From positions 2,666,001 through 2,730,000 of the forward strand of contig NW_026781945.1 of NCBI RefSeq assembly GCF_031769215.1: a DNA stretch of 64,000 nucleotides, given 5' to 3'. This stretch comes from Ylistrum balloti. Its lineage: Eukaryota. Shown here piece after piece: positions 38,985-64,000 of this stretch. The notes below the pieces were generated by a model. The model had not been told where the DNA came from. It saw only the letters and a program-made list of their open reading frames with translations, and made no database searches. Each line of letters opens with the position of its first letter. The first letter of the stretch is position 1. The position numbers and the translations under genes were made by a program.

Positions 38985-41315
38985 GTTGGTCACCTAAATT
39001 CTCCACCTAGATGTTCACTGATGAGAGGGCATGTTTACCTATATTCACCTCCCAGATGTTTACTGATGAGAAGGCTTGTTAACCTATACTTACCACCCAG
39101 ATGTTTACTGATGAGAAGGCTTGTTAACCTATATTCACCTCCCAGATGTTTACTGATGATAAGGCATGTTAACCTATATTCTCCATCCAGATGTTTACTG
39201 ATGAGAAAGCTTGTTAACCTATATTCTCCATCCAGATGTTTACTGATGAGAAAGCTTGTTTACCTATATTCACCACCCAGATGTTTACTGATGAGAGGGT
39301 TTGTTAACCTATACTTACTCCCCAGATGTGTACTGATAAGGCTTAACCTATATTCTCCATCCAGATGTTTACTGATGAGAAGGCTTGTTAACCTATATTC
39401 ACCACCCAGATGTTTACTAATGAGAAGGTATGTTTACCTGTACTCTCCACTTAGATGTTCATTAATGAGAGGGCATGTTTACCTGTACTCTCCACCTAGA
39501 TGTTCACTGATGAGAAGGCATGTTTACCTGTACTCTCCACCTAGATGTTCACTGATGAGAGGGCATGTTTACCTGTACTCTCCACCTAGATGTTCACTGA
39601 TGAGAGGGCATGTTTACCTGTACTCTCCACCTAGATGTTCACTGATGAGAGGGCATGTTTACCTGTACTCTCCACCCAGATGTTTACTGATGAGAAGGCA
39701 TGTTTACCTGTACTCTCCACCTAGATGTTCACTGATGAGAGGGCATGTTTACCTGTACTCTCCACCTAGATGTTCACTGATGAGAGGGCATGTTTACCTG
39801 TACTCTCCACCTAGATGTTCACTGATGAGAGGGCATGTTTACCTGTACTCTCCACCTAGATGTTTACTGATGAGAAGGCATGTTTACCTGTACTCTCCAC
39901 CTAGATGTTCACTGATGAGAAGGCATGTTTACCTGTACTCTCCACCTAGATGTACACTGATGAGAAGGCATGTTTACCTGTACTCTCCACCTAGATGTTC
40001 ACTGATGAGAGGACATGTTTACCTGTACTCTCCACCTAGATGTTCACTGATGAGAGGGCATGTTTACCTGTACTCTCCACCAGTATGTTCACTAATGAGG
40101 CTTGTTAACCTATATTCTCCACCCAGATGTTTACTGATGAGAAGTCTTGTTAACCTATTTTCTCCACCCAGATGTTTACTGATGAGAAGTCTTGTTAACC
40201 TATATTCTCCACCCAGATGTTTACTGATGAGAAGTCTTGTTAACCTATATTCTCCACCCAGATGTATACTGATGAGAAGTCTTGTTAACCTATATTCACC
40301 ACCCAGATGTTTACTGATGAGAAGGCTTGTTAACCTATATTCTCCACCCAGATGTTTACTGATGAGAAGTCTTGTTAACCTATATTCATCACCCAGATGT
40401 TAACTGATGAGAAGTCTTGTTAACCTATATTCACCACCCAGATGTTTACTGATGAGAAGTCTTGTTAACCTATATTCTCCACCCAGATGTTTACTGATGA
40501 GAAGGCTTGTTAACCTATATTCTCCACCCAGATGTTTACTGATGAGAAGTCTTGTTAACCTATATTCTCCACACAGATGTTTACTGCTGAGAAGTCTTGT
40601 TAACCTATATTCTCCAACCAGATGTTTACTGATGAGAAGGCTTGTTAACCTATATTCTCCACCCAGATGTTTACTGATGAGAAGTCTTGTTAACCTATAT
40701 TCTCCACCCAGATGTTTACTGATGAGAAGGCTTGTTAACCTATATTCTCCACCCAGATGTTTACTGATGAGAAGCCTTGTTAACCTATATTCTCCACCCA
40801 GATGTTTACTGATGAGAAGGCTTGTTAACCTATATTCTCCACCCAGATGTTTACTGATGAGAAGTCTTGTTAACCTATATTCTCCACCCAGATGTTTACT
40901 GATGAGAAGGCTTGTTAACCTATATTCTCCACCCAGATGTTCACTGATGAGAAGTCTTGTTAACCTATATTCTCCACCCAGATGTTTACTGATGAGAAGT
41001 CTTGTTAACCTATATTCTCCACCCAGATGTTTACTGATGAGAAGTCTTGTTAACCTATATTCACCACCCAGATGTTTACTGATGAGAAGGCTTGTTAACC
41101 TATATTCTCCACCCAGATGTTTACTGATGAGAAGTCTTGTTAACCTATATTCTCCACCCAGATGTTTACTGATGAGAAGTCTTGTTAACCTATATTCACC
41201 ACCCAGATGTTAACTGATGAGAAGTCTTGTTAACCTATATTCACCACCCAGATGTTAACTGATGAGAAGTCTTGTTAACCTATATTCTCCACCCAGATGT
41301 TTACTGATGAGAAGG
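38985..41315. repeat. 45-bp satellite, ~52 copies, two sub-types
   Basis: Units CTTGTTAACCTATATTCTCCACCCAGATGTTTACTGATGAGAAG(G/T) and CATGTTTACCTGTACTCTCCACCTAGATGTTCACTGATGAGAGGG. They explain the 473-aa and 268-aa ORFs with a 15-aa period. Confidence 0.97.
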
Positions 41316-44300
41316 ATGAAGAGCAATTTTAATAGTATTAATAAGATACTACAAATGTTTATGTTGATGACCTAAGCCACTATACAACAACTGCTCCATA
41401 TACAGCATGATTAAGGTGCATCATCTGATCATGCAAGGACATTGTTAAAAAAAAACTGCTTACAGAAACATATATATGTTGCTTGTTTGTTCATAAGGTG
41501 CCATTTTTTCAACACTAACACATATGCATTTGAAAGTTTTAGTATGGAAAAACTTGCAAACAACTGGCATATTTCAATCTATGTTTCACAACTGAAAACA
41601 CCAGAAACTTTAATTAGCAAACTACATGCTGGTGTGGCTTGGTGTTGTGAAGCATGGCGTTATGAACTGGGGTATCATCATGGTAAAGTGAACCACAGTG
41701 ATGTATACACTAAGTCAAGACCTTGATGATTATTTCAGTCTGATCCAAATCCCATAGACGGTTTAAAGGTGATGTTCAAGAAAACCAATATTGTTGTTGC
41801 CATGCTGAACTTTTGACAAGACCAAAAATTAACAACACTTTGTCGGCTCTTTTCCTTAACATTCCCGCTAATTTGATAGCAATTTCAGGATCATTCAAGG
41901 CAAGTTTCGGATCATTCCACTGGTGGAACTTCAGATGAAGATTCAAATACCGGTGAGTGTTTTTCAAGAAAATCATGATTGTACAATCATTTTACAAACA
42001 GGCCAGCACTAGATCGATCCCAATGGTAGAATTTGAAGTAACAATGGTAAAATGTGTAAAGGTTACACAGTGGATGGTGCTAGGCACACAATAGACAAAA
42101 CATGTTGGTTATAGGTCATCCTGACCAAAAGTCGTACCATGTAAAAATAAATCTCAACCATTTTGATTTTTTTGTAATGCAGAATCTATTGAATTTGCAA
42201 ATACATAACTCAGTACAATGTATATATGTATTTAACCCTTCTGTTATCACATGAATTAAAAAATTAGTTAGTTCTATTTATCCATCAGTTAGATAACACA
42301 TTAAACCAATTACAAAAGGAAGTATGATTGCACAAGATAAGACTTTTCTAGAAGTTTTATAAAAAATTGATTTTAAATCAAAATCGTATATTCTCAATAG
42401 ATTATAAATTCTATCAACATTGCATTTCATCTCTGGTCATAGCATCCCATTGCAGAATATTGAATTACTGATCTTGTATCTTATCATAAAACCCTGATGT
42501 TCTAAGATACACATTTTCATGTAATTACTGATGCTGGGCATCACTTTAACTACAATTAACCCAAATCACACACAACCATTCTACAAATTAAATAATAAAT
42601 TGATATGTTTCCCATTTTGATTTACTACCCTGTGTCTAAACTGAACTTTGTTGATATTGGTAAGTAATGTTGATAGATAAATATTCATAGACAAGAAGAT
42701 AAAATCCTACGTGGTAAAAAACAACGAATGTTTATATATAAGAGTTACTTGTGACAATAAAAAATATCCGAGATCAACTCATACCCGAAAGAAAACTGGT
42801 AAAATATGAATATAAATTATTAAAAGGATACAAACCTGAATTAACAAGTACAAATTTAAAAGATTATTTCATAAAAATATCAATTACACCAGTGTTAATT
42901 GACCATTGTTTACATTTACTGCAACAAGTTTTTACAATATTTGAGATTATGTTTAAATGTAACATAGAAAGAGAAAAGACAAAATTTAGATAGTATTAAC
43001 AAGTGTCTGGTTATATATTAATTGAACATTAGTATTGTTAATATCAAATATAGACACACTTTGCAGCATTTAAATTCCAAAGAGTGAAACACTGCAGGTT
43101 TTGTTCTAAAAAACTGTTCTGGTGATTGTACTTTTCCACAGATCTGTGTCAAACTATGGTCATGAATGTCCCTTAACAGAAGGGGGATAATCATGTTTTA
43201 TCTTTTAAACACATTTTCATATCACTAACAATGGAAAGAATAAGTTTTTACCAAAAACAAACACATTAGAACCACCATGATTACAATCTAGTATTCATTC
43301 TTCCATACCACAATTACACTCAATAGTATGATGTATAATCTCTCAATGTTTCTTTTTTAATTCAAACAATGATCTATATAGGAAGTTAAACTAACAAGTT
43401 TCTAACATCCAATTTCACGAATGAAATTTCACGAATGAAATTTCACCAATCAGCACTAATATTACCATGAAGATCACAAGAAAGTAACACTCTATCAATC
43501 TGTGTATGATGAGATCCTAGCCATCAAATTCGTGGAAAGGGACTATTTATGGAAATCTGCATACTCAGATAATATAGAATATCAGGGGAATTTTATCAAA
43601 CAGTGATTGGATCCTTGCGATCAAATTCGCAGAAACAATGAAATTCCATAAATCAACAATTTTCTATAGACAATAAGGAAGCAAAAGCAGCAGAAATATT
43701 TCTCAATACAAGACCTGAAACATCAAAATAAAAAACAGAACACAAATACAGTAAAACCCCATTTACTTGACCCCGTTTTCCTTGAATACCCCTAATCATC
43801 GAACAAGTCGCTTTGTCCTAGCCATGTCCTTCTTAAGTGTTTCTAGTTATTCAACCTCCAATTCCTCGACCCATTATTCCTTAAATACCATGCATTCCTC
43901 AAACTTATTTTTACCCCAATCTTTTCATGTTCATAGTATTTCCTCCCTCTATTTGTTGAACAATTTATCTCTATCACAGAACTGTGATCAACTTCAGGGT
44001 AACTGTTCCAATGACACATTAATTGCATGTAAGTTATGTACACATGTTTACGTCAAGATTGTTCGCATCTTTTCTGTTACTCTGCAAATTCCACTTACCA
44101 GAAATGAAAAGTATTGCAGGTATATAGTATTTGGTCCCATAACAGTTTTAAAGATTTTCTTTGCAATTTGATGACTTAATGTATTAATTATTCATCAATT
44201 TATATGGAATGCTGTAAATCCACCTCCTATTTACTACATACACTAAGCTTAAGAAACCATCAATTACATACTTACTGTAGAATTCAGATTGGTGTTGCGA

Positions 44301-44892
44301 TACCATTTTTATATAATTCTCTCCATTAAAATTTGAGACAAATTGACGTTTTTAGTCAATCAAAAAATGATTATAAATTTGACTGGTCAAAGAACTGTGT
44401 ATTGAAGAAGTCATTCAAGGACATGGATTGTCCATACAGGACCATCAATAACCAATCTCTGATTACCTGAATACGCCATATTCCTTAAACTATTGACATG
44501 GTCCCAAGGAGCATGATTTAATGAGGTCTTACTGTATGACATTACTGAACAATTACAAATGCCAAATTAATTCAAGAAAATTAATCACAAAAAATACATT
44601 TTGATTTTTAAAACATTCTAGAATAATTCTGTATGGTAATGAAACTTAAATAAGAACACATACACTATTCCCTAAAACTAAGCTGAAACAAAGACACTAG
44701 CTAAACAGAATCATTAACATGTATTCAATTAACTGATTTTGGCATCAATTAATTTCCCTAGTAAACAACAATGCCCCAATTTCAATAAATCCTTAATCTT
44801 GCAAAAACCTCATATATTGGAAAAAATATCACCTATATTGTCACAATCAGTCCTTAATTTTAAAATCCTAAGTATGATGTTCACAGCAGGCT

Positions 44893-44928
44893 TTAAAGTC
44901 GACTAGCTGGTTCATCATCCAGGCCTAG

Positions 44929-44931
<3 letters not shown>
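44893..44931 (-). other. Stop-codon readthrough extension of IDH1 with a cryptic PTS1 (X-LGLDDEPASRL*)
   Basis: The minus strand reads TGA CTA GGC CTG GAT GAT GAA CCA GCT AGT CGA CTT TAA. This combines the UGA-CUAG leaky context with a terminal SRL. Confidence 0.8.
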
Positions 44932-55053
<10,122 letters not shown>

Positions 55054-63439: not shown

Positions 63440-64000
63440 ATTGTCTGTTGAACTTAATAAAATATGTGATATAATGGGTTGTAGTATACCATTGAGGGGT
63501 AAACTTGATATTACATGTGATATTATAGGTTGTGGCATACCATTGAGGGGTAAACTTTGTATTACAGGTGATATAATGGGTTGTGGTATACCATTGAGGG
63601 GTAAATGTTGTATTACATGTGATGTCATGGGTTGTGGTATACCATTGAGGGGTAAACTTTGTATTACAGGTGATATAATGGGTTGTAGTATATGATTGAG
63701 AGGTAAACTTTGTATTACATGTGATATAATGTGTTGTAGTATACCATTGAAGGGTAAACTTTGTAGTACATGTGATATAATGTGTTGTAGTATACCATTG
63801 AGGGGTAAACTTTGTATTACAGGTGATATAATGGGTTGTGGTATACCATTGAGGGGTAAACTTTGTATTACATGTGATATAATGGGTTGTGGTATACCAT
63901 TGAGGGGTAAACTTTGTATTACAGGTGATGTCATGGGTTGTGGTATACCATTGAGGGGTAAACTTTGTATTACAGGTGATGTCATGGGTTGTGGTATACC
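63440..64000. repeat. 51-bp tandem repeat, ~11 copies, running off the window
   Basis: Unit GTGGTATACCATTGAGGGGTAAACTTTGTATTACAGGTGATATAATGGGTT. It explains the 17-aa periodic ORF 63410-63985. Lies in a SPRYD3 intron. Confidence 0.95.

Follow-up and report, generated by a model that had tools for sequence, protein, structure and literature searches.

The gene for cytosolic NADP-isocitrate dehydrogenase (IDH1) of the scallop Ylistrum balloti probably gives rise to a minor peroxisomal isoform through stop-codon readthrough, a reading to which we assign a probability of about 85% on comparative grounds. The main open reading frame closes at a UGA followed by CUAG, and a short in-frame extension past this stop carries a hidden SRL, a canonical peroxisomal targeting signal (PTS1), at its end. 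This layout is almost certainly real, given that the same layout is displayed by 12 protostome species. An initial annotation of this stretch had proposed that IDH1 is split between the cytosol and the peroxisome by readthrough, and the 11 further orthologs described below support that interpretation comparatively, with readthrough and import as its predicted consequences.

The IDH1 gene and the codons past its stop

The window, i.e., the whole 64,000-nucleotide stretch of DNA analysed in this work, holds the IDH1 gene on its minus strand, and a gene model was built from the stop-free frames and splice sites found in it (Table 1). Every intron displays GT-AG borders, and the 12 exons of this spliced model encode a protein of 412 aa, identical at 412/412 residues to the NCBI entry 'isocitrate dehydrogenase [NADP] cytoplasmic-like [Ylistrum balloti]' (P0163), which carries the Iso_dh domain (PF00180); given this 100% match, the gene model equals the public annotation. 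Identity to other animal IDH1 proteins ranges from 79 to 97%. Furthermore, the N-terminus is devoid of a mitochondrial presequence, and homology to bacterial IDH of 404-405 aa starts from residue 1.

Tandem repeats were observed within and around the gene. The last IDH1 intron holds a 126-bp repeat of about 7 copies with 98% identity (window 45299-46211), which yields recurring 36-aa mock ORFs on the minus strand, and intron 3 holds an array of 5 copies of a 25-bp unit (window 51909-52035). Downstream of IDH1, a 45-bp satellite with about 52 copies and 93% identity (window 38992-41315) can be read on the minus strand as one long, repetitive open frame. A further array, of a 51-bp unit with at least 10.5 copies, occupies window 63464-64000 and continues past the window end.

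Table 1. Features of the IDH1 locus in the window, and 3' ends of the orthologs read from genomic loci
Feature	Position in window	Strand	Remarks
IDH1 (cytosolic NADP-isocitrate dehydrogenase), ATG to first stop	44929..55053	-	Spliced model, 412 aa
IDH1 exons 1-6	55053-55038, 54942-54903, 52243-52137, 51702-51616, 50319-50159, 49832-49686	-	
IDH1 exons 7-12	49203-49136, 48815-48747, 48418-48267, 47202-47062, 46602-46440, 45016-44929	-	
First stop TGA, proposed leaky stop	44929..44931	-	TGA in 12/12 species read
CTAG directly 3' of the stop, readthrough-promoting UGA-CUAG context	44925..44928	-	Context rules: Stiebler 2014
In-frame extension, 11 codons, LGLDDEPASRL	44896..44928	-	Sequence reading
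AGT CGA CTT = SRL, canonical PTS1 tripeptide	44896..44904	-	Sequence reading
Second stop TAA, puts SRL at the C-terminus	44893..44895	-	Position kept in Pecten (TGA) and Argopecten (TAA)
Pecten maximus			TGA CTAG; extension LDMEDEPASRL
Argopecten irradians			TGA CTAG; extension LDVDGEPASRL
Magallana gigas			TGA CTAG; extension LAGRDPSKL
Mytilus edulis			TGA CTAG; extension LEESKL
Mercenaria mercenaria			TGA CTAG; extension LDSNARL
Haliotis rufescens			TGA CTAA; extension LKPTIETTRSSL, end TTRSSL
Aplysia californica			TGA CTAC; 19-codon extension, end RDASKL
Octopus bimaculoides			TGA CTCG; extension LGRFKPITESKL, end ITESKL
Lingula anatina			TGA CTGG; extension LAAGEAQGLSKL, end QGLSKL
Owenia fusiformis			TGA CTAT; extension LSNAKL
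Limulus polyphemus			TGA CTGC; extension LLKSSISRL

Read on the minus strand, the main ORF finishes with GAA AAG AGA ATG GGA CAA TCC AGT followed by TGA, encoding ...EKRMGQSS, and its C-terminus QSS holds no PTS1. The extension (44928-44896) is made of the codons CTA GGC CTG GAT GAT GAA CCA GCT AGT CGA CTT, after which TAA follows. The initial annotation had described a protein ending in KRMGQSS-TGA without PTS1, continued by CTA...CTT TAA (LGLDDEPASRL) past a leaky UGA-CUAG context; the sequence agrees with this description base for base, and the leakiness of the context is documented in the literature (Stiebler 2014, PMC4207609; Jungreis et al.). In Ustilago and in HeLa cells, a CU directly after UGA suffices to cause readthrough, which increases with A as the third and G as the fourth base after the stop (Stiebler 2014, PMC4207609), and UGA-CUAG triggers readthrough in four human genes, as summarised by Jungreis et al.

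With this arrangement, the majority of ribosomes would terminate at UGA and produce cytosolic IDH1 ending in ...QSS, devoid of a peroxisomal signal, and the weak termination context UGA-CUAG would lead a small fraction of ribosomes to insert an amino acid at UGA. The residue inserted at a readthrough UGA is Arg, Trp or Cys. Readthrough ribosomes would then decode 11 further codons and terminate at TAA, yielding an isoform ending in -SRL, which could be bound by PEX5 as a PTS1 and thus imported into peroxisomes. The occurrence of readthrough in scallop IDH1, its rate and the import of its product are all predictions of this model. The peroxisomal role, demonstrated for yeast Idp3, is carried over to the scallop enzyme by analogy and may apply to it, and the acidic residues DDE upstream of SRL may reduce the strength of the PTS1 in Ylistrum.

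Layout of the 3' end across protostome orthologs

A search using exon 11 as query against a 50%-identity representative library returned nearly exclusively exon-sized genomic ORF fragments, and no usable full-length animal IDH1 was found among them; the best fragment match (P0001) lies on a 1.7 kb contig that ends before the last exon. An exon alignment on a broken plant-like carrier (A1) was discarded, as its fragments were misplaced by MAFFT. Scallop IDH1 proteins were retrieved with a profile built from two partial carriers and the exons of the window (A3), and a second search with the full-length protein as query yielded named IDH1 sequences from animals, about 60 in number. For 11 orthologs, the 3' end was then read from the genomic locus; together with Ylistrum, these make 12 protostome species belonging to Mollusca, Brachiopoda, Annelida and Chelicerata (Table 1).

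The first stop is TGA followed by CT in all 12 species, and the full CTAG is found in every bivalve (6/6). A canonical [SA][KR]L stands directly before the second stop in 11 of the 12, the remaining one being Haliotis, with SSL, a non-canonical and weaker tripeptide that was nevertheless rated 'targeted' by a PTS1 predictor in Xenopus MDH1 and human SYNJ2 (Stiebler 2014 Table S2, PMC4207609). Recurrence of TGA-CT with an in-frame PTS1 across molluscs and other lophotrochozoans, which the initial annotation had put forward as a check of its proposal, was thus observed throughout for the stop context, and with a single non-canonical ending for the signal. The linkers comprise 6-19 codons (extensions of 18-57 nt) and are unalignable between orders, and the stop, the CT, the frame and the terminal tripeptide are kept despite this, a pattern to be expected from a translated and selected extension rather than from inherited neutral sequence.

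The main ORF lacks a canonical PTS1 in all named protostome IDH1 proteins, whose annotated C-termini include MSS, GQS, ESS, MSA, MAQ and LEQ, among others; this set covers bivalves, gastropods, cephalopods, a chiton, Lingula, Owenia, Lineus, a bryozoan, spiders, Limulus and a mantis shrimp. A main-ORF PTS1 is present in hemichordates (MSKL), fish (PKL) and Trichoplax (SSKL).

Alternative readings of the sequence past the stop

The same PTS1-bearing product could be obtained if the UGA were bypassed by A-to-I editing (UGA to UGG) or by selenocysteine insertion, routes that we consider improbable. UGA is also the codon for selenocysteine, and in Ylistrum it lies within a predicted hairpin of 10+4 bp (window 44897-44934, minus strand, z = -2.5), a conceivable ADAR substrate in which AGUUGACUAG, containing the UGA, pairs with CUAGUCGACU, containing the SRL codons. 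This pairing arises because AGT-TGA-CT is almost palindromic to AGT-CGA-CT. Folding of the Pecten and Argopecten sequences did not return this hairpin, and those of oyster, mussel and clam fold differently and without significance (z from -1.4 to +1.0); an RNA structure stimulating readthrough or editing was therefore rejected, the Ylistrum hairpin being an incidental by-product that is not conserved in five other bivalves. Likewise, a search for SECIS elements gave no family match in window 42500-45100, covering 2.4 kb downstream, at E values up to 10, and the selenoprotein reading of the UGA was rejected for this interval. Moreover, the feature kept among the species is CU at positions +4/+5, a determinant of readthrough and not a hallmark of editing or of selenocysteine insertion.

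How the extension evolves over short distances bears on whether it is translated at all. When the Ylistrum, Pecten and Argopecten sequences are aligned over the last exon and its 3' flank (A4), 22 sites vary in the final 27 codons of the CDS, and 19 of these are third positions. The extension of 33 nt that follows is invariant at 26/33 sites (79%) and free of gaps, and in its last six codons (EPASRL, 18 nt) the sole differences are GCT/GCA and CTT/CTG, both synonymous and at third positions. The place of the second stop is fixed and its identity varies (TAA in Ylistrum, TGA in Pecten, TAA in Argopecten); past it, conservation falls to 45% invariant sites with gaps in the next 33 nt, and to 27% in a further 67 nt. 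Thus, the extension evolves in a coding-like manner among the three scallops. A non-coding explanation, in which the block after the stop constitutes a 3'UTR regulatory element such as a site for an RNA-binding protein or a miRNA, can appeal to the fact that conserved blocks occur in 3'UTRs, these scallops offering an example at 44871-44851. However, the last six codons have changed only synonymously, unlike what would be expected of an element acting at the nucleotide level, and between orders the nucleotides diverge whereas [SA][KR]L with its stop, the frame and TGA-CT persist; we therefore hold this explanation to be very improbable.

The example just mentioned is a block of about 21 nt, TTAGGATTTT(A/C)AAATT(A/T)AGGA, located on the minus strand 22 nt past the second stop (A4 columns 147-168). 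It is near-invariant across the three scallops, with variable flanks, and probably has a regulatory function in the 3'UTR.

Chance could also have placed an in-frame SRL and a CTAG in an untranslated 3'UTR, as short motifs arise randomly. To estimate this, each stop triplet of the window (TGA, TAA or TAG), on either strand, was taken as a mock stop (n=8265). An in-frame [SAC][KRH][LM] directly before the next stop was found for 0.2% of them, and CTA follows 1.2% of the TGA in the window; the IDH1 site is the sole place in the window where a PTS1-like end is combined with CTA after TGA. A pooled null was also drawn from the window together with the 11 orthologous loci. Of its 34196 mock stops, 0.22% are followed by a canonical PTS1 at a distance of up to 20 codons; CT follows 5.3% of TGA, and TGA makes up 36% of stops, which together give a joint expectation of about 4e-5 per stop. 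As controls, frames +1 and +2 were read in the same stretch of all 12 species and showed no canonical PTS1. The view of the initial annotation that a leaky context and an in-frame SRL would hardly coincide by chance is in keeping with these figures; with the layout present in 12/12 species of four phyla in spite of unalignable linkers, and with the coding-like substitutions of the scallops, the ortholog comparison effectively rules coincidence out. Alternative splicing that would skip the stop and fuse the ORF to the PTS1, the origin ascribed to the cryptic PTS1 of fungal GAPDH by a paper citing Freitag 2012, is hardly credible, as the extension adjoins the stop within one exon, its 18-57 nt in the 12 species are too small for an intron, and the stop is not framed by any GT-AG pair.

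Relation to known systems and evolutionary reading

As a kind, the readthrough PTS1 of NADP-IDH is already known, having been predicted for insects and Aplysia; the initial annotation had suspected a prior proposal for an insect enzyme, and such a proposal dates from 2014. Stiebler et al. 2014 (PMC4207609) name the NADP-IDH of D. melanogaster as a readthrough candidate, and present TGACTA with a PTS1 extension in Drosophila (SHL), Apis (SKY), Tribolium (ARL) and Aplysia in their Fig. S3B, where 'no readthrough' is given for the IDH of C. elegans, Xenopus, chicken, human and Ustilago. The extension listed there for Aplysia californica, N16-SKL with a PTS1 score of +9.7, agrees with our reading of the gene (19 codons ending in SKL). 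A 2016 review restates IDH readthrough as a prediction, a Drosophila cell-based survey rated Idh as non-peroxisomal, and our literature search found no later paper testing IDH readthrough or extending it to molluscs.

The enzyme, the TGA-CTA and a short in-frame PTS1 extension are common to Ylistrum and to the NADP-IDH of Drosophila melanogaster, Apis mellifera, Tribolium castaneum and Aplysia californica. Unlike the four species of that prediction, Ylistrum is a bivalve displaying the full UGA-CUAG and SRL, and whereas the 2014 prediction covered four species in a supplementary figure, the present comparison covers 12 species of 4 phyla and includes coding-like evolution. New here are the instances from bivalves, each of which has the complete UGA-CUAG, and those from a cephalopod, a brachiopod, an annelid and a chelicerate, as well as the coding signature in scallops.

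Experimentally proven systems of a similar kind are found in vertebrates, and the sequence features of scallop IDH1 are those of the readthrough-derived cryptic PTS1 class to which LDHBx, MDH1x and fungal PGK belong. The initial annotation had stated that LDHB and MDH1 form minor peroxisomal isoforms by readthrough of UGA-CUA and that vertebrate IDH1 carries AKL, and both points are confirmed, the latter for the human protein, by Stiebler 2014 (PMC4207609); the human LDHB extension ends in SSRL and that of MDH1 in CRL (Table S2 of the same paper). As in human LDHBx and MDH1x (Schueren et al. 2014; Stiebler et al. 2014), UGA-CUA(G) in scallop IDH1 would gate a PTS1 concealed behind the stop of an abundant dehydrogenase of the cytosol, the tripeptide SRL is common to the LDHB isoform and Ylistrum IDH1, and the logic would be shared as well, with a minor portion of the enzyme placed in peroxisomes to balance redox cofactors. 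The scallop case differs in the enzyme and in its cofactor (NADP versus NAD), and its peroxisomal isoform is a predicted one, whereas the human cases have been proven experimentally.

Peroxisomal NADP-IDH is reached by other routes elsewhere. Pre-duplication yeast IDP2 (Yanagida et al. 2015, PMC4526572) resembles scallop IDH1 as a cytosolic NADP-IDH with a PTS1 hidden in the 3'UTR and partial peroxisomal localisation; however, in yeast a frameshift gives access to the signal, which is in the +1 frame (PMC4526572), and that of the scallop would be reached by in-frame readthrough. Vertebrate, hemichordate, placozoan and fungal IDH1/Idp would share with the scallop the outcome, i.e., a peroxisomal NADP-IDH obtained through a C-terminal PTS1. 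In these constitutive forms every molecule bears the PTS1 in the main ORF, as with the AKL or PKL of vertebrate IDH1, in contrast to the scallop PTS1, which is gated by a stop codon.

Together with the published insect cases, the data from the 12 species suggest that the protostome ancestor already had the arrangement. We lean slightly towards UGA-CU with a hidden PTS1 being an ancestral protostome trait of IDH1, more than 500 million years old, as opposed to one that is scattered in the manner of an 'evolutionary playground'. Molluscs, brachiopods, annelids, chelicerates and insects would then still carry it and C. elegans would have lost it, with deuterostomes, Placozoa and fungi retaining a main-ORF PTS1. 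As Placozoa, fungi and deuterostomes have the signal in the main ORF, the gated form is probably derived, judged against these three groups. The residue before the leaky stop is Ser in 7/12 species and Ala in Lingula, giving [S/A]-UGA-Leu (window 44926-44934 in Ylistrum). This resembles a PTS1 whose middle K/R codon has been made a stop, and may point to one CGA/AGA codon of an ancestral tail having mutated to UGA; a readthrough constraint on the codon before the stop, or chance, could also account for it.

If the protostome ancestry is true, IDH1 readthrough would be among the oldest programmed readthrough events in animals, and would represent a standard protostome means of setting the peroxisomal share of NADPH production. 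The present findings add a well-supported case of predicted functional readthrough beyond vertebrates, insects and fungi, in which what was earlier a four-species supplementary prediction now appears as a layout conserved across at least four protostome phyla. Regarding annotation, the predicted peroxisomal isoform is missing from protostome IDH1 entries, and inventories of invertebrate peroxisomes would rate IDH as absent or non-peroxisomal if the main ORF alone is considered. The supply of peroxisomal NADPH in PUFA-rich marine animals thereby becomes addressable, and the orthologs offer UGA-CUN contexts and PTS1 endings that vary naturally, with which the tuning of the peroxisomal share may be studied.
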